Shown: piece after piece, positions 9,794 to 41,329 of the stretch
Layout of the letters: the number at the start of each line of letters is the position of its first letter
Position numbering within the stretch: position 1 is the stretch's first letter
Virus record (IMG/VR): IMGVR_UViG_3300034072_002211
Span: 186,001 to 250,000 of that record
DNA length: 64,000 nucleotides
Direction: 5' to 3' (one strand)
The notes under the pieces: generated by a model
The model's database searches: none
Told to the model about the DNA's origin: nothing
The model's input: only the letters and a program-made list of their open reading frames with translations
Made by a program: the position numbers and the translations under genes

Positions 9794-10091
9794 TGTTTCT
9801 ACCTACTAGTCTATGGAGTGTAATAGGTAGGACAAGTTAGTAGTCTGCAACAGTGTGCCCACTACAGGCCCATGAAAGGCTTGGATTTTTCGGTGACTAG
9901 TTGTTCTCTAACTACCAAAGGTAGGGGCAGTCTTGTAGTGTTTTCTACCTAGTACACTTGTGTATTAGTTTGATAACACACAACTTCAATCTACAATGCT
10001 TTTTTGTGAAGTAGCAGTTGGACTCTTACCAAAGAAATCTCGAAGTCAGACTGCTAAGGTAGTCTGACTTGATGTAGTGTCTGAAGTGTAG

Positions 10092-17307: not shown

Positions 17308-17347
17308 GTCCTGTTTAGCAGAACTGGTGAGGGTGTCAACCAGTTTT
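17308..17347 (-). promoter_or_regulatory. repeated early-promoter/hairpin element
   Basis: GTCCTGTTTAGCAGAACTGGTGA..GTCAACCAGTTTT. Confidence 0.8.
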
Positions 17348-19070
17348 AGGAGAAAAGATGCGGCTCCAAGAGGCATCCAACATGCCAGTGGCAGAACTCC
17401 TCCATGAGGGTGTCCTTCTCAAATCCCAGGTAGCTTGCGAACTCCTGGAAGCCCAGGTCGCAATGCCGGATCTTGATGTCAGTGTTCTTGAAGAAGCGCA
17501 CGTTGGCTTGCCAGATGATCCGGCTGATCTCAAGCTCTGCGGCCGCTGGGATCTTTGCGCGAGCGCGCAGGCTCACGTAGGGCGCAGCATAGGGAACGCG
17601 GGCCTTGGCTCCACTACCCAGGATAACGCTGAGCCCGCCATAGTCGGAGCCAACAATGAAGTCCCGGAGGTCCACCACGTCATAGTATTCAGTGCCCGCA
17701 TAGTCACCGAAGTCGCTGAGGATGACCTGATCGACGATCTTCACGCCTTGGGGCAAGAGATCCAAAGCTGAACGGATAGTACCGCCGGTCACCGTGTCAT
17801 CTTCGACCAGCACATATTCACCATCAGGAATGTTCTGCGCCTGCTCCTCGAGAAAAGGAAAACCCACGCGCTCAGCACGGAACTGTGGCTTCCGTTGGGC
17901 TTCACTGACTGCGAAGTAACGGGTGCTCTGAAACATCTCATCACCGGGGAAGAACGGATCCAGGCTGAGAGTTAGGCGGTCACCAACGACCTTCTCAGCT
18001 TGTGCGAGCTGTTCGCTCACTGGAATGAGGTGGACCTTGTTCTGATGGCCGAGACTTTTGAACACCTGTGCGATACCAAGTCGAACCGTGCTCTGGAGTT
18101 GGATCCTGCGCTTCTCGAGTTCGCTTTCATCAATGATGCTGTGCCAGCGACGAATCGCGAGGTTCTCTTCATTGCGGATCAGGTAGGGCAGTTCGCCCGT
18201 GTCCTGCTTGTCCCAGGTCAACAGGTAGTCGCGGACCTTGGTGTTCAGATGGTCATGATTGCCTTCGCGCGCCAACTTGCTCGAGATGTCGCTCCGCGGG
18301 ATCATGATCGACTGGCCGGGAAGAGCCTCACCAAAGCCTTCGTTATCGGAACCGTAGACGTAGAAGACCCGCAGATATTGACCAACATGGAACTTGAGGT
18401 ATTCCTGGAGCCGCATGACCACATCGGTGAAGTTGATCTCGGCGGGCATGTAACGGGCCGCCCAGGGGTCACAGTCCAGCCAGTTGCTCTCTTGCGTGGC
18501 CAGCTCAACCATCGAGCAACGATGCTCTGCGGGGATGGCAGCGGTGCCACCATACTTCTGCCCCACATAGCTGTCGTGACCGGGCGCAAAGTATCCACCC
18601 AGAACGCTGTAACCCTGATCTTCTGCGATCTTGCGCGCCTCGTCCATCATTGCGATGTGGCCGTTGTGGATGGGAGCCATGCCGCCCGTGGTCACTAGCA
18701 CAATGGGCTCACGGCTGCGATCGGACTTCAGCCATGCGATGAAATGCTTGCGGACCTTCTCCAGTGGAGTGGTCATGAAGACAGGATCCCAAGCCTTGTG
18801 CGACATCGCGAGCTGGGGCAAGCCGTCGTCGAAGAAGCCCGCGCGGTAGAGATCCTTGCTGTCCTGAGTCTTCTCATAAACCCGACGGTAGCAGGGATCC
18901 GCGAGAGCTTTCCAGGCATACCGCTGGGCGGTGCTCATGCCCTCCTCCAAAAGCCTACGGCCTGCGAGGTGGATGTCATTGTGTCCACTCAACGGTTCAA
19001 GCCCGAGGAGCTCATAGAGATTCTCCTTGGGACGATCCATTGTGATACCGCAGGCGTAGGTGTCTGTCAT
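17346..19070 (-). CDS. J-domain-like + NMN/NaMN adenylyltransferase + type I phosphoribosyltransferase fusion
   Basis: NLYELLGL...ALADPCYRRVYE; TGGMAPIHNGH (HxGH), FYVYGSD; VLVEDDTVTGGT PRPP-binding loop. Confidence 0.8.
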   Translation of the reverse strand: MTDTYACGITMDRPKENLYELLGLEPLSGHNDIHLAGRRLLEEGMSTAQRYAWKALADPCYRRVYEKTQDSKDLYRAGFFDDGLPQLAMSHKAWDPVFMTTPLEKVRKHFIAWLKSDRSREPIVLVTTGGMAPIHNGHIAMMDEARKIAEDQGYSVLGGYFAPGHDSYVGQKYGGTAAIPAEHRCSMVELATQESNWLDCDPWAARYMPAEINFTDVVMRLQEYLKFHVGQYLRVFYVYGSDNEGFGEALPGQSIMIPRSDISSKLAREGNHDHLNTKVRDYLLTWDKQDTGELPYLIRNEENLAIRRWHSIIDESELEKRRIQLQSTVRLGIAQVFKSLGHQNKVHLIPVSEQLAQAEKVVGDRLTLSLDPFFPGDEMFQSTRYFAVSEAQRKPQFRAERVGFPFLEEQAQNIPDGEYVLVEDDTVTGGTIRSALDLLPQGVKIVDQVILSDFGDYAGTEYYDVVDLRDFIVGSDYGGLSVILGSGAKARVPYAAPYVSLRARAKIPAAAELEISRIIWQANVRFFKNTDIKIRHCDLGFQEFASYLGFEKDTLMEEFCHWHVGCLLEPHLFS

Positions 19071-19108: not shown

Positions 19109-19507
19109 TTAAAGGTCGAACAGACTCCTGCCGTAGGGGCACTCGATCATGGGTTCTGTGGGACGGACGCCGGCGCTCTGGAGCGCAGCATTCTTGTTCC
19201 TCGCGGCCTCTGCTCGTTCGGCGAGTTCATACGCCTTGCTGTTGAGCTCATGGACCTCACGCGCCGTCAGCCGCCCGTCATTGAGCGCCTTAGCCACGTC
19301 CATTTTGAGGGCCGGACACTTGCCCGAGTCGTAGTCGCTCGTTGGACCGACCTTGGCAGCATCCTCGTATTGGTTGGGGGTAGCTTCTGCGTTTGGACGC
19401 ACGATCCAGTTGGGCAGCGCATACCAGACGCAATAGAGGATGCCGAGGATCAGCACGAGCGTGGTCAGCCACTTGATGGCGTGCCAGCGATTGTAGGGCT
19501 TGCTCAT
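19109..19507 (-). CDS. membrane-anchored periplasmic protein
   Basis: N-terminal TM helix; start MSKPYN. Confidence 0.7.
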   Translation of the reverse strand: MSKPYNRWHAIKWLTTLVLILGILYCVWYALPNWIVRPNAEATPNQYEDAAKVGPTSDYDSGKCPALKMDVAKALNDGRLTAREVHELNSKAYELAERAEAARNKNAALQSAGVRPTEPMIECPYGRSLFDL

Positions 19508-19743
19508 TGGATCGCCTTGATCATCAGCTCGTAGATGCGAGCCTGTGGAGTGTTGGGATACTGGCCGGGAACGAACAGACCGCAGCGACCAGTGGTATGG
19601 CACATCGCAGCCCAGAGAGCTTCATTGAGGCGCTCATTGGATTCCTGCCGCTCCTCGGCCGTTGGGTTCCAGCCTGCCCCACCGGCGCGCATCTGAGCGT
19701 AGATGGTCGCGAGTTCTTCGCGCTCTTGTGGGGTCAGGCTCAT
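19504..19743 (-). CDS. hypothetical protein
   Basis: ATGA overlaps. Confidence 0.7.
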   Translation of the reverse strand: MSLTPQEREELATIYAQMRAGGAGWNPTAEERQESNERLNEALWAAMCHTTGRCGLFVPGQYPNTPQARIYELMIKAIQ

Positions 19744-27725: not shown

Positions 27726-28505
27726 TTATGCCCTCTCGAATACGATATCAGTGCGGATGATGATCTTCTCCTTGTCCCACTCCTGAGAGCCCTGCTGGAA
27801 GGGCTCCCCATCGTGAAGCAGCCGATGGTCGAACAATAGCGCATGACCAGCGCGTGGCTTGTTGGCGAAGATGACTTCGTCATCGTGACCTGCTCGGTCC
27901 CAATCACTGAAGTCCATTTCGTCCATACGCTTGCCGACTTGTGGATCCCTGAGGAAGCGTGTGGCCCCATACTCGTTGGTCGTCAGGTAGATGACCAGGC
28001 TCATGAGGGTCCGCTGGGTCTCTGTCTTGGCATAGGTGCCATCATAGTGGGCGACCAGCTGTCCGCCATCCTCATAGCGGATAAAGCGCATCAGCGGATT
28101 GACGCCAATAGGCCGCCAGAGGCTGTGGTTGTCGTGGTCCGTGGGCGTGAATGGGTCACAGACTCGCACGTCGGGAAGGAAGGGCTTGAGGCGCCGCCAG
28201 AGGACGTCTGCGAAGGCTTCGTTGAAATTGCTCAGACGGAAGTTGCCGATCTGCTCATAGGGCTTGTTCGCGTAACCGTCCAGTCCTACCGCCTGCCATG
28301 CGTTGCGACGGAGCCCGTCGAGCAGAACGCTGACGATGCTCGGTGGGAGCAAGTTGCTCGCTGTGAAAGCCTTGGCACCATTCTCGAGGTCATGAGCCTT
28401 GTACGACCACACGGGATCGCAGAGGTAGTCGCCGCCGAAATACCCAGCAGAGATAATCTTGTTGGCGTAGTCCGAATAGTCGAAAGAGTTGACGAATCCG
28501 CTCAT
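27726..28505 (-). CDS. 2OG-Fe(II) oxygenase (prolyl-4-hydroxylase-like)
   Basis: RFIRY..G...AHYDG (HxD), distal LLHDG His, IIRTD Arg. Confidence 0.85.
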   Translation of the reverse strand: MSGFVNSFDYSDYANKIISAGYFGGDYLCDPVWSYKAHDLENGAKAFTASNLLPPSIVSVLLDGLRRNAWQAVGLDGYANKPYEQIGNFRLSNFNEAFADVLWRRLKPFLPDVRVCDPFTPTDHDNHSLWRPIGVNPLMRFIRYEDGGQLVAHYDGTYAKTETQRTLMSLVIYLTTNEYGATRFLRDPQVGKRMDEMDFSDWDRAGHDDEVIFANKPRAGHALLFDHRLLHDGEPFQQGSQEWDKEKIIIRTDIVFERA

Positions 28506-29500
28506 GCTGCCCTCCAGGCCGGGTTATCCCAACCACCCTTAACACCAGCTTGCATGACGTCAAGATGGACAGCGGGCGACCGCCCCAGATACTTGTGCGC
28601 GTTGTAGCGATGCATCCGCTCCAAGTTGCCCACGTATTCGTCATATTGACGATAGTCATCCTCGCTGCCCTTTTCGTCGAGGATTTGATCGACCATGATG
28701 CGGGCATTGGTATGCCACTTCATGTGCGTGAACAACTCCACGAAATCGTAGGGCGCACCGAAGACGACCTCATCCGTGGTCGCGTCGAACATATCACCCG
28801 TGGGCGCACGTTCCAGCACCTCGCGCGGCACGCCGAGGAACTCGCCGATCGCATAGACCTCGGACTTGAACATATCGCTGATCAGCTGGAGATCGACCAT
28901 ACCGTCGCTGGCCTTGCCGAAATAACCCAGGTAACCACCCTCGCTGAGGTTGGTCGTGCCGATGACCAGGCCGGGCTGACCCTGACCGGCCAGGACGCTG
29001 GTGATGTAATAATAGGTCGGAGTGCGGGCGTAGCTGGTGACCTGTCCGCGGCACCAGTAATACTTCTCCTCGACCGCCGATCCCAGCACGGCCTCCACGC
29101 TGTTGATGATTGCCTCGCTGATCGGGGAGATGTCGATCTCCAGCGGGTTGACTGCGAATGCCTCGCAGACTTGCTTGGCCAGATTGGCCGCCTTGGTCTG
29201 CCCCGTTACGCCGAGGTTGGTGTGATCAGGCATGGTGACTGCCACGATACGCTCGATAGGCGAACCCGGTTCCTGCTGAGCCCGTGCGACCAGACCGAGA
29301 ACCACAGCACTGTCGATGCCGCCGGAAACCGCGACCACTGCGCTCTTGAGCCCGCTCTGTCTGTAATAGTCGTTGAGCAGCTTGACCTTGGCCTCAACGA
29401 CTCGCTCTACGTTGAAGCCTCGCTGAAGCCGACACATCTCAAGGGCCTCCTTGAGTGGCTGAGACATCTGCATGTTCGTTGCGTGATTACGAATTTCCAT
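28502..29500 (-). CDS. nadE: NH3-dependent NAD+ synthetase
   Basis: VAVSGGIDSAVV PP-loop, GTTNLSEG..GYFGK.SDG, DMFKSEVY..GEFLGVP...L.RAPT. Confidence 0.9.
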   Translation of the reverse strand: MEIRNHATNMQMSQPLKEALEMCRLQRGFNVERVVEAKVKLLNDYYRQSGLKSAVVAVSGGIDSAVVLGLVARAQQEPGSPIERIVAVTMPDHTNLGVTGQTKAANLAKQVCEAFAVNPLEIDISPISEAIINSVEAVLGSAVEEKYYWCRGQVTSYARTPTYYYITSVLAGQGQPGLVIGTTNLSEGGYLGYFGKASDGMVDLQLISDMFKSEVYAIGEFLGVPREVLERAPTGDMFDATTDEVVFGAPYDFVELFTHMKWHTNARIMVDQILDEKGSEDDYRQYDEYVGNLERMHRYNAHKYLGRSPAVHLDVMQAGVKGGWDNPAWRAA

Positions 29501-29511
29501 GTTGCTATTCC

Positions 29512-29718
29512 TTAGCAGGTGGACTGGAGGACGACCGAACCATCTGCCCGTTCGCAAAGGACGACGCTGACCATGTGAGCCTGGCTCTTGCGCGGCTTGA
29601 AATGCTCGGTAGCCTTGACCTTGGCCTGGTAAAGCGATGAAGCGTAGAGCTCAATCTGCTTGCCGTTGAAAAAACCCATGTAACCGCAGTCGCCGGGGGT
29701 CTTTTCGTTAATTGTCAT
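29512..29718 (-). CDS. small phage protein
   Basis: AGGAGATCG RBS and promoter element. Confidence 0.75.
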   Translation of the reverse strand: MTINEKTPGDCGYMGFFNGKQIELYASSLYQAKVKATEHFKPRKSQAHMVSVVLCERADGSVVLQSTC

Positions 29719-33678: not shown

Positions 33679-34185
33679 TCAACCAGAAAGTTTGTCCAGT
33701 TTGTCACAAAGTGTCTGGAAACGTTCTGAGGTCAATTCCCACTCTTCCCCGGTGGGCTTCAGAGATAGAACGGTGCGGACCGCGTGTTCGCGTTCTTCAT
33801 CCACGATAGCGCCGCGCTTCTCTTGGATGATGCGCGATGTCTCGTTCTTCTTGTTATAACCGCTGCGAAGCTCGTCATAGAGCCCCTCGCCTCGCCAGAG
33901 GTTGATCATCTCGCGCATCAGCGTCTGATAGATTCCAAGGCGCCGCCAAGACGGAAGCGTATAGGCTCCTGTGATGTAGACTTTTCGATGGGCTTCGATA
34001 GGTGCGAAGATCACCATAGAAATCGGTTGGCCATTATAATAGATGGCTGCGAAATGGTATAGTTCGGTGTTGGGCCAGTTGCTGGCCATTCCCCGCCGTG
34101 CCATTTCATTCTTATACCAGAGGTTCATCTCCGCGATCTCGGGAGCATTGCCTATCTGGCTCATTCGGAACATGATTTCACCCAT
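33679..34185 (-). CDS. GNAT-family acetyltransferase
   Basis: GAYTLPSWRRLGIYQTL motif A; N..S. Confidence 0.8.
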   Translation of the reverse strand: MGEIMFRMSQIGNAPEIAEMNLWYKNEMARRGMASNWPNTELYHFAAIYYNGQPISMVIFAPIEAHRKVYITGAYTLPSWRRLGIYQTLMREMINLWRGEGLYDELRSGYNKKNETSRIIQEKRGAIVDEEREHAVRTVLSLKPTGEEWELTSERFQTLCDKLDKLSG

Positions 34186-34223
34186 GTGCCTACTCTAACA
34201 TAGACACATGGGAGGTCAACACC

Positions 34224-34316
34224 TTACTTGAGTTTGCTGAGTAGGTCCAGCATGTCCGAGGGGATGGTTTCCTGGACCCGGAAGCGAGACTGAAGGGTTT
34301 CACCGATCATGGCCAT
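34224..34316 (-). CDS. NepR-like anti-sigma factor mimic (30 aa, not in ORF track)
   Basis: MAMIGETLQSRFRVQETIPSDMLDLLSKLK; GAGGAG RBS; matches IG..L...Y/F...E.IP..M.DLL.KL. Confidence 0.7.
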   Translation of the reverse strand: MAMIGETLQSRFRVQETIPSDMLDLLSKLK

Positions 34317-34357
34317 TTGCTGCTCCTCTTTTGTCTTTGGAGCCAGTTTAACGCACC

Positions 34358-34735
34358 TCATATGGAATCGTTGCGAGTTTTCACCACAAACCTCTCCGGC
34401 TCTGAATCTCCCAACTTGACCAGCGCCGCTATGTCAGATGGGACGATCACATAAAACTCAACACGTCGGAGCGAATCATCGTCCGATCCTGCCACCCTCA
34501 TCATAGGACCAACCGGTCTCCATTCAAAGCCCAGAATGGCATTGTGCTTAAGGAATTCTCCTAACCTAAGTAAGGCAATTCCCGTGGCTCCTCCCTCAAC
34601 GAGCCAGCGCAAATGCCGGTGCTCTGTCTCCCAGTCGCTCGTGTCCGTGTAGATGCCGCTGTAACACACTGTAGTCGCACACAAGTGGACCCGCGTGTGA
34701 CCCTCTGAGAGCTCTGCCAGGGTGCTCATATCCAC
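34358..34735 (-). CDS. hypothetical protein
   Basis: operonic ORF. Confidence 0.6.
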   Translation of the reverse strand: MDMSTLAELSEGHTRVHLCATTVCYSGIYTDTSDWETEHRHLRWLVEGGATGIALLRLGEFLKHNAILGFEWRPVGPMMRVAGSDDDSLRRVEFYVIVPSDIAALVKLGDSEPERFVVKTRNDSI

Positions 34736-35094
34736 GGACGCAGACCCTTGAGGATCTCTTCGCGTTCGTTGACGTCAATGGGCCCAATGCCAAGAGCCGT
34801 GATCATAGGACGCGGGAACACGGTCTTGCCTGCATCCTTGATCAGAGCCGTGCCGCACTTTCCCTTGTAGAGACGGCTCAGCTGATGGAGCGTCTCCTCG
34901 CTGGCGTGTAGGCAAACCTTGCCCACGATACCAGTGTCGCGATAGGCTTTGACCTGCTCTGGATGGTTGTCCATTGCGTCGAAGATAGCCTCGGTGAATG
35001 CGTGACCGATCTGGGCACCCATCTTTCCGCGGTTACCGCCTGCGGCTTTCACTGCTTCGTCGCTCACGATACAGTAGAGTTTGATATCAGGCAC
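34726..35094 (-). CDS. pth2: peptidyl-tRNA hydrolase type 2
   Basis: GKMGAQIGHA, KVCL, IKDAGKTVF, TALGIGP. Confidence 0.9.
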   Translation of the reverse strand: MPDIKLYCIVSDEAVKAAGGNRGKMGAQIGHAFTEAIFDAMDNHPEQVKAYRDTGIVGKVCLHASEETLHQLSRLYKGKCGTALIKDAGKTVFPRPMITALGIGPIDVNEREEILKGLRPWI

Positions 35095-38275: not shown

Positions 38276-38908
38276 TCAGACTAGATCCCAGTCGGGATCC
38301 TTGACGTCCTGACGGGCATCGAAACGTGCGAACATGGCGCGCATGTCCTCGTAGAGCTTGGGATCGCCCTTGGTGAAGCCGACCCACTGCTCCTTCTTCT
38401 CCTGGACCCACTTGACCGCGAAGCCAGGATCCTGCGCGACGATGCTGGGCATGTTGGACTTCATATCCGCCAGCTTGACCGTCTGCTGCTCAGGTTCAGC
38501 GAGCCAGGAATGCTCCTTGTCCATGTTCTTTCGGAACTTGCGGTTGCCATCCTCGGGCTTCGAGACGTCAGTGACCTGATAGACGCCGGCGACGACCTTC
38601 TGGGCCACTTCGCTGCCGAATTCTGCGAATGCCGCACCCACATCGCTGAGCGTCTTGTGAGTGTCCTCGACCACATCGTGGCAGATGGCGACTGCCACCG
38701 TGATCGCATCACCGTGGATCGACCGTGCGACCATCTTGGCCACCTGGATCGGGTGAACCATGTAGGGCGCCTTGCTATACTTGCGGCGCTGCCCACCCAG
38801 CACAGGGTCAGGCTTCAGCGCATGGTTCTCATGCGCGTCTGTGGCGAACTCGATTGCCCGCAGGACAATCGGATCCTTCATCACGTCATAGGTTGCTTCT
38901 TCTGTCAT
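38276..38908 (-). CDS. HD-domain (p)ppGpp hydrolase-like protein (SpoT-HD/Mesh1-like)
   Basis: AIEFA..AH...QRRK....PY..HP..VA, CHDVVEDT, VKLAD..SN. Confidence 0.85.
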   Translation of the reverse strand: MTEEATYDVMKDPIVLRAIEFATDAHENHALKPDPVLGGQRRKYSKAPYMVHPIQVAKMVARSIHGDAITVAVAICHDVVEDTHKTLSDVGAAFAEFGSEVAQKVVAGVYQVTDVSKPEDGNRKFRKNMDKEHSWLAEPEQQTVKLADMKSNMPSIVAQDPGFAVKWVQEKKEQWVGFTKGDPKLYEDMRAMFARFDARQDVKDPDWDLV

Positions 38909-39634: not shown

Positions 39635-41329
39635 CTAAGCGTCAACCTGTTCGTATTGACGTAACAGCGCAATGGTGTTTCTGAGCCCGTAAGCCACTGT
39701 GAAAGCACCGAAACGTGGCCCATCGCTTGAACCCAAGAGACATTCGTAGAGAGCTTGGAACCATGACCGCAACGGCTCAAACTCATGCTTCTTGCCGACC
39801 TCATAGACCTGATACTGATAATGCTCGGCGGTCATGTTTTCGAGCATCAGAGAGAAACGGGTCGCAAGCTCACTGAATGCTGCCCGCTCCTTCTCGGTGG
39901 GTTCTCGGCGAGAACGCTCAAACAGCCCCTTGTCGGTTGCGTAGGCGATGACCTTGGGAGCCATTTCCCGCGCATAAGCCGCGGTCGCGTCGGCGAACTC
40001 ACGACCCTGCATCAAGTAAGCGAGCAGGTTCTCTGGCTGCTTGGCCTGAGCCACAACAGCCAAGTTGAGCATGAGTCCATGGGAGATGTCAGAGCTCAGT
40101 GGCTCAGGCAATTCCACGCGGAAGTGCCACGTGGCGTCATCGGGCGTCGTCTCAGCCTTCTGCCGCAACTTGACATACTGGTCTTCCAGCTGGGGCACGA
40201 TCTCTCTGTAGAGCTTCTTTGCCGCGCGTGGGTTCTGAAACATGAACAGCATCAGGGAGCCAGTCGACCCATAGGTCAACCACTGCTCGACCGTAAAGCC
40301 GTTGCCCTTGCTCTTGCTGATCTTTGCGCCGTTTTCGTCCAGGAACAGTTCATAGGTCAGGTTGAGCGGAGGGGTTCCGCCGAGGATCCGACAGATCTGG
40401 TTGGAAGCCTTGACGCTGTCAATGAGGTCCTTGCCAGACATCTCATAGTCCACGTCAAAGTAGACCCAGCGCATCGCCCAGTCGACCTTCCACTGAAGCT
40501 TGGCATTGCCGTTGTGGCTCATCTGGCCACAGTGCTCACCGTCGTCCGTGACCCAGCCGATGTATCCACGTGCGCCAGTTGCCTCGGCCTTGACCTGCAG
40601 AACAGGGCCCTTGCCACACCAACGCGGCATAAACGGACTGTAGGTCGCCTTGCGATCATCCCCCAGCGTGGCGAGCATGATCTCCTGAATCTTGTCGAAG
40701 TTGTCCCAGACGCGGTTCAGCATCTCGTTGAACTTGCCGGACTTGTAATAGCGCGAGGAGCTCACAAAGCTCACAGTGCTGCGGTCGGGCGATGCTCCCA
40801 CTTGGCCGCCATTGTAGTCCTTGAGGATGCGATCCACAAACTCGCAGAGCTTGTCGTTGTTGGCTTCGGCAAAGGTCATGGGATCAACCATGACTTGCGT
40901 GACACCCGGATCGTTGGAATAGGGCGAAGGAACCTCACTGAGCGGCAGGCCCAGATACTCGTTCATCCACTCGGGCATGTCGTCAGGGACCTTACGCATT
41001 GCGTCATAGTCATCCGAGAACATGATCAGACGGGTCTTGTAGGCGTTCTGCGTGAGCTCATTGAAAGCGCGCATCACCCAGAGGGTGCGGACCACCTCAC
41101 CAAAGGTGCCGATATGCGGAGCGCCCGAGGGACCATAGCCGGTCTCAAAGGTCACCACATCACCAGGCTTCTTGCCCTTCTTCTCGATATGAGCGAGAAG
41201 GCTGCGGGCCTCCTGGAAGGGCCAAGACTTTGCCTGGTCGAAAATGGTAGCCTCCTTTGCCTGCTCTGCTTTGATGGCACGGATCCGCTCGATGAGGGCT
41301 TCCTCTTCCCAGCGGTTCATCATAGCCAT
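39635..41329 (-). CDS. lysS: class I lysyl-tRNA synthetase
   Basis: TGYGPSG.PHIGT, KLQWKVDWAMRW, EMSGKDL, KISKSKGN, GPRFG. Confidence 0.95.
   Translation of the reverse strand: MAMMNRWEEEALIERIRAIKAEQAKEATIFDQAKSWPFQEARSLLAHIEKKGKKPGDVVTFETGYGPSGAPHIGTFGEVVRTLWVMRAFNELTQNAYKTRLIMFSDDYDAMRKVPDDMPEWMNEYLGLPLSEVPSPYSNDPGVTQVMVDPMTFAEANNDKLCEFVDRILKDYNGGQVGASPDRSTVSFVSSSRYYKSGKFNEMLNRVWDNFDKIQEIMLATLGDDRKATYSPFMPRWCGKGPVLQVKAEATGARGYIGWVTDDGEHCGQMSHNGNAKLQWKVDWAMRWVYFDVDYEMSGKDLIDSVKASNQICRILGGTPPLNLTYELFLDENGAKISKSKGNGFTVEQWLTYGSTGSLMLFMFQNPRAAKKLYREIVPQLEDQYVKLRQKAETTPDDATWHFRVELPEPLSSDISHGLMLNLAVVAQAKQPENLLAYLMQGREFADATAAYAREMAPKVIAYATDKGLFERSRREPTEKERAAFSELATRFSLMLENMTAEHYQYQVYEVGKKHEFEPLRSWFQALYECLLGSSDGPRFGAFTVAYGLRNTIALLRQYEQVDA

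Follow-up and report, generated by a model that had tools for sequence, protein, structure and literature searches.

A huge phage of roughly 468 kb encodes a conserved 30-residue peptide that looks like the core of NepR, the protein that holds the general-stress sigma factor of alphaproteobacteria in check, and we infer, from sequence and predicted structure alone, that the phage may use it to switch off the stress response of its host. The open reading frame (ORF) was found in a 64-kb stretch of the phage genome (hereafter the window), and translates to MAMIGETLQSRFRVQETIPSDMLDLLSKLK. [quoted passage not shown] The features of the locus, in window coordinates, are as follows.

34224-34316, minus strand: 30-codon ORF (TAA stop included) encoding the NepR-like peptide.
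34323-34328, minus strand: Shine-Dalgarno sequence GAGGAG, separated by the 6-nt spacer CAGCAA from the ATG at 34316-34314.
34272-34313, minus strand: residues 2-15, predicted helix 1 (MIGETLQSRFRVQ), with NepR-compatible [IV]G..L.S.[FY] spacing but two residues shorter than in NepR.
34260-34271, minus strand: residues 16-19, ETIP, equivalent to the four-residue NepR linker E-x-x-P.
34227-34259, minus strand: residues 20-30, predicted helix 2 (SDMLDLLSKLK), which ends at the C-terminus, as in sphingomonad NepR.
34317-34361, minus strand: possible 15-codon N-terminal extension (45-aa form), the ATG of which overlaps the TGA stop of the upstream gene (ATGA).
34358-34735, minus strand: upstream 125-aa gene of unknown function, for which no family was found; the small ORF follows it as a last cistron.
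34192-34219, minus strand: sigma-70-like promoter TTGACC-16-TAGAGT, directly after the small ORF and before a GNAT acetyltransferase gene, marking the downstream edge of the slot.

The ORF fills most of a 172-nt gap between the 125-aa gene and the GNAT gene (33679-34185), and a PTH2 peptidyl-tRNA hydrolase gene lies just upstream. The promoter carries an extended TG, and its -10 element ends 6 nt before the ATG of the GNAT gene; the GNAT mRNA could therefore be leaderless. The same DNA occurs at 100% identity in a 468,011-bp JGI contig, a 277-kb IMG/VR record and a 6.9-kb Logan contig, and because all copies of this phage are identical they were of no use for selection analysis. The window holds tail-fibre and virion-structural matches, a helicase and many genes without family. 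It also encodes, all on the minus strand, a cluster of host-like functions: a class I lysyl-tRNA synthetase (LysRS, 39635-41329), PTH2 (34726-35094), NAD synthase (28502-29557), a 574-aa protein with an NMNAT-like domain (17346-19070) and a 2OG-Fe(II) oxygenase (27726-28505). In addition, a 210-aa protein with an HD_4 domain (38276-38908), also on the minus strand, aligns to the hydrolase part of RelA/SpoT and so looks like a small alarmone hydrolase. Nothing similar was found among GenBank phages, where a megablast search with the region returned no match.

Several lines of evidence show that the ORF is a real gene. First, its in-frame codon-usage score is at the 74th percentile of 30-codon windows taken from the phage's own genes and above 99.6% of off-frame windows, the other five frames look non-coding, and GC3 is 0.77 against 0.66 +/- 0.10 for the phage genes. 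Second, it was called by two independent gene callers, as 45 aa at JGI and as 30 aa in Logan. Third, a search with the LysRS uncovered a clade of related phages, 58–75% identical in LysRS, on contigs that cluster at about 435–471 kb (435,856; 462,455; 463,863; 465,559; 468,011; 470,746), suggesting a clade of huge phages with a common genome size, none of which is in GenBank phages. The order LysRS, hydrolase-domain gene, PTH2 and a gene of about 122 aa is kept in several of these relatives, whereas a GNAT-sized 168-aa gene follows the slot only in the window and in two relatives, here termed L024 and L026. In three other relatives, L023 (9971-10060), L025 (13016-13105) and L028 (17532-17621), the slot after the gene of about 122 aa, a homologue of the 125-aa gene, holds a 30-codon ORF with its start at the same position and a Shine-Dalgarno site 6 nt upstream; spacings cluster around 7 nt in the genes of the phage itself. 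Fourth, synonymous changes are in excess, both for the window against L023 (pS 0.61, pN 0.23, dN/dS about 0.2, Fisher p 0.0024) and for L025 against L028 (pS 0.84, pN 0.12, p 1e-7), indicating purifying selection.

The 15-codon extension behaves differently. L023 has no start codon there, and the window and L023 show 0 synonymous against 10 non-synonymous nucleotide differences in this stretch, while the unchanged codons are identical in sequence. The extension is therefore probably leader sequence and the 30-residue form the conserved product, although a longer isoform in some phages cannot be excluded. The gene is accessory and dispensable: in L024 and L026, which keep the rest of the region and also carry an arginyl-tRNA synthetase, the slot is empty and the stop of the upstream gene is followed directly by the conserved promoter, whose TTGAC and TGTTA elements are kept in relatives with and without the small ORF. 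In another relative, L030, an unrelated, strongly hydrophobic 46-aa ORF (19434-19574, plus strand) follows PTH2, and the position after PTH2 thus looks like a hot spot for small accessory genes. In L023 the homologue of the upstream gene is interrupted by a TAA (9831-9833), its C-terminal 30 codons remaining as a separate ORF, which could reflect a nonsense mutation or an assembly error. One further contig (L052) ended before the slot. That the ORF is not translated and is merely a chance open frame in an intergenic spacer is most improbable. Its very short length and the absence of a database homologue above threshold would be compatible with this view, but the start and Shine-Dalgarno site conserved in four phages, the excess of synonymous change and the phage-like codon usage in one frame only speak against it, and the region matches no RNA family in Rfam and folds no better than shuffled sequence.

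Unbiased searches point to NepR. Of 24,736 Pfam models, only NepR (PF18557) matches, at E 0.0059 and 16.7 bits, which is below the gathering threshold of 25.7 bits; the match covers residues 14–30 and model positions 16–32 of 35. The 45-aa form scores 15.2 bits, and the L023, L025 and L028 orthologues obtain no NepR hit, that of L023 obtaining no Pfam hit at all. Of 177,635 PDB sequences, the single peptide matches only NepR of Sphingomonas sp. Fr1 (2LFW_B), at E 0.11, in an alignment that runs through both helices with a two-residue gap, as the initial annotation had proposed. Profiles built from the phage peptides alone, with no NepR information, improve this: the window peptide plus that of L023 finds 2LFW_B as the only hit at E 0.0018, over exactly the linker and helix 2, and all four peptides find it first at E 0.0098, with the next hit at E 2.5.

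Targeted searches agree, with the reservation that the comparison set was retrieved with a motif shared with the phage peptide and the resulting scores are inflated; we therefore give more weight to the unbiased searches. Pattern scans retrieved NepR genes from Parasphingopyxis and Sphingomonas jejuensis in canonical ecfG-phyR/nepR-phyK loci of Sphingomonadales, together with 16 metagenomic loci, eleven of which have a neighboring phyR that is 57–82% identical to the S. jejuensis gene (66–82% in ten of them). The best genomic matches to the peptide are NepR genes in such canonical loci of Sphingomonadales. In the Parasphingopyxis genome (L004 2888-3741, minus strand) phyR appears split into two ORFs of 146 and 126 aa, a frameshift or an assembly error. 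Seventeen of these proteins all hit Pfam NepR at E 0.01 or better. Against them, hhalign gives 97.8% probability and E 9.5e-13 over 29 columns. An HMM of the set scores the ORF at 41.6 bits, whereas the next best of 1,828 six-frame pieces of the window scores 7 bits; the L023 peptide scores 29 bits. The best single match, a metagenomic NepR, shares 16 of 29 residues, and both proteins end in SKLK. The residues listed by the initial annotation (IG, L, F, E, IP, M, DLL and KL) do align with NepR, and the resemblance specifically to sphingomonad NepR held up.

Splitting the model shows that the linker and helix 2 give 41.0 of the 42.2 bits of the core match. An HMM of helix 1 alone gives −0.8 bits (rank 313 of 1,245); I, G, L, S and F fall at the right internal spacing for NepR, but this is not independent evidence, and the aromatic-to-proline spacing is 6 instead of 8. 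Hydrophobic-moment analysis did not discriminate. The L025/L028 subfamily has lost the glutamate of the linker and the MLDLL motif, and is tied to NepR only by synteny, the family alignment, length, the IP.DM.D.L.K.K tail and a 90%-probability hhalign match; on its own it does not recover NepR from the PDB. AlphaFold on the family alignment predicts a helix at 2–15, a non-helical ETIP at 16–19 and a helix at 20–28 (mean pLDDT 73), while a real NepR modeled the same way gives a disordered 19-residue lead, a 16-residue helix, the linker EEIP and a 10-residue helix. Foldseek of the model against the PDB gave no match, as expected for so small a model. Published Caulobacter NepR has helix 1 at A33–N47, the linker at E48–P51 and helix 2 at D52–A61 (PMC4551977). 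Thus, the linker is intact, and the two missing residues lie at the C-terminal end of helix 1, not in the linker where the initial annotation had placed them. The absence of the disordered N-terminal region, also claimed there, is borne out: the conserved product starts one residue before helix 1.

Could the resemblance be chance or convergence, the peptide being a conserved small phage protein with an unrelated partner? We consider this unlikely. In its favor, only about 15 residues carry the signal, the unbiased E-values are modest (between 0.002 and 0.1), part of the family does not recover NepR, and the ORF was picked out from a whole window after the fact. Word-index and exhaustive phmmer searches found only the peptide itself, although a 30-residue query cannot reach significance in billions of sequences; a word-index search with a real NepR returned only three proteins. 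Tblastn of the peptide against GenBank phages and plasmids found nothing, and IMG/VR scans with NepR and phage-peptide motifs found only the record of this phage. On the other hand, NepR is the sole hit in two independent libraries, the hit improves with the phage-only profile, the match covers the whole peptide, ends at the C-terminus in both proteins and keeps the E-x-x-P linker, and the predicted architecture is the same. Furthermore, the nearest named cellular relatives of the phage LysRS clade, about 45% identical, are all Alphaproteobacteria, the only class with NepR, and the peptide is closer to sphingomonad NepR than to Caulobacter NepR, which the single-sequence search did not detect. 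Both facts fit an inferred alphaproteobacterial, perhaps sphingomonad, host, although the search for sphingomonad matches was biased. Overall, we put the probability of homology at about 0.85.

We propose that the peptide derives from, or closely mimics, the helix-linker-helix core of a sphingomonad-type NepR and acts as a minimal anti-sigma peptide, a function to which we assign a probability of about 0.55. In this view, it would be made in quantity from a strong ribosome-binding site during infection and would bind the host ECF sigma factor sigma-EcfG the way NepR does. Because it lacks the disordered N-terminal region that NepR needs to engage phospho-PhyR, the stress signal of the host could not pull it off; the general stress response would stay off, and RNA polymerase core would stay available for sigma-70-type phage promoters. 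What the analysis establishes is that the gene is real and conserved, that the linker and helix 2 are NepR-like, and that the predicted architecture is helix-linker-helix; the target, the binding, the direction of the effect and the alphaproteobacterial, probably sphingomonad, host are inferred.

Published work on a comparable 32-residue Caulobacter NepR core (Herrou et al. 2015, PMC4551977) cuts both ways. The core co-purifies 1:1 with sigma-T and shows no detectable binding to full-length phospho-PhyR, which fits the suggestion of the initial annotation that the peptide perhaps evades PhyR; it binds the isolated PhyR sigma-like domain (KD 455 nM) and only weakly stimulates PhyR phosphorylation. 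Mutating the linker, which the phage peptide keeps, to poly-alanine abolishes all binding, and overexpressed full-length NepR represses the response even under stress. However, the core without its disordered termini did not repress sigma-T in Caulobacter cells and formed a less stable complex. High expression or a better-adapted interface would have to compensate.

These data also bear on other modes of action. The peptide might instead occupy the sigma-like domain of phosphorylated PhyR, the alternative also raised by the initial annotation, leaving host NepR on sigma-EcfG with the same outcome. Binding of NepR cores to the isolated domain, and the proposal that NepR2 of Sphingopyxis granuli dampens the response by titrating PhyR (PMC9303464), are in line with this, but the Caulobacter core lacking the N-terminal region, which the phage peptide also lacks, did not detectably bind phospho-PhyR, and we regard this mode as unlikely. 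Less likely still is that the peptide competes with host NepR for sigma-EcfG without inhibiting it, turning the stress response on during infection. The Caulobacter core indeed binds sigma-T without repressing it in vivo; however, the peptide would have to displace full-length NepR, which forms the more stable complex, EcfG-type promoters are not enriched in the window (2 found, 1.1 expected), and the neighboring alarmone-hydrolase-like gene points to silencing of stress signals. Equally doubtful is that the peptide partners a phage-encoded ECF sigma factor or PhyR-like protein and times phage transcription. Huge phages often encode their own transcription factors, but no EcfG, PhyR or PhyK relative was found in the 64-kb window, which leaves out about 400 kb of the genome, a pattern scan of IMG/VR with EcfG did not hit the 277-kb record of this phage (a weak test), and relatives that lack the peptide keep the rest of the region.

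The hydrolase-domain gene is conserved downstream of the LysRS gene, one to five genes away, in every related phage whose contig reaches that far (nine of the ten fetched), suggesting a stress-silencing theme in which the phages also counter the stringent response. A more far-reaching, and tentative, possibility is that this is the first phage-encoded regulator of the alphaproteobacterial general stress response, a natural 30-residue NepR core that locks sigma-EcfG and is blind to PhyR, in an accessory slot of a clade of roughly 440–470-kb phages that also carry the RelA/SpoT-type alarmone-hydrolase-like gene and would thereby silence two host stress pathways at once. The initial annotation was not aware of a described phage NepR; consistent with this, full-text literature searches found no phage NepR and no link between phage infection and the PhyR-NepR-EcfG system, and tblastn with sphingomonad and Caulobacter NepR found nothing credible in 50,697 GenBank phage records. 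If the peptide binds sigma-EcfG, phages of alphaproteobacteria would be shown to capture and strip down a host anti-sigma factor to disarm the general stress response. It would also be a natural experiment on whether the 30-residue helical core can work without the disordered termini, and whether losing them makes an anti-sigma factor insensitive to the PhyR partner switch. In practice, a 30-residue peptide that shuts off EcfG-dependent transcription would be a simple genetic tool for Sphingomonas, Caulobacter, rhizobia and related bacteria. The finding also shows that genes below the usual length cut-offs in huge phages can be recognizable, if on present evidence putative, host-takeover factors.

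Compared with the NepR of Sphingomonadales (PF18557; 2LFW chain B), the linker E-x-[IV]-P and helix 2 [SD][DE]MLDLLxKL are near-identical, both proteins end one residue after KL, helix 1 has [IV]G..L.S.[FY] at the same internal spacing, and the predicted architecture is helix-linker-helix. The phage peptide differs in being phage-encoded, in having no phyR or ecfG nearby in the window (unlike the bacterial comparison loci), in its shorter helix 1 and its sub-threshold Pfam score, and in lacking the N-terminal region; nepR orthologues are stated to invariably have flanking extensions, the N-terminal one being needed for phospho-PhyR binding and for function in vivo (PMC4551977). We therefore describe it as a NepR-derived minimal variant and not as a family member. 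The Caulobacter short version (Q31–E62), of which the phage peptide is the natural counterpart, is almost the same size (32 against 30 residues) and likewise consists of the two helices and the linker without the disordered termini, but is an artificial construct from another order, about one-third identical by eye over the aligned segment. Among the extra or orphan NepR paralogues of sphingomonads, Sphingopyxis NepR2 illustrates that a stand-alone second NepR can tune the response, and an orphan group in bacterial metagenome contigs (L008, L010-L015; for example L008 2941-3090, plus strand), located between glnE and a zinc-peptidase gene and not next to phyR, shows that the aromatic-to-proline spacing can vary, with 7 residues instead of 8, one residue missing at the same place; these proteins are bacterial, carry N-terminal extensions and pass the Pfam model at E 0.01 or better. 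As for described phage anti-sigma factors, the peptide matches no PHROG family, no other Pfam or NCBIfam family and, by tblastn, nothing in the 50,697 GenBank phage records. The nearest functional analogue is T7 Gp5.7 (bioRxiv 10.1101/262279), a small phage protein that manages the general-stress sigma factor of the host by inhibiting the sigma-S holoenzyme; it has no sequence relationship to the peptide, acts on RNA polymerase carrying a group-2 sigma factor in E. coli and not on an ECF sigma factor, and was not acquired from the host's own anti-sigma factor. The classical factors against the housekeeping sigma are also small phage proteins that bind a host sigma factor to redirect transcription. 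T4 AsiA is one of these, and ORF67 of S. aureus phage G1 (PMC12282133) is another; they target sigma-70 or sigma-A, have unrelated folds, and neither is a copy of a host anti-sigma factor.
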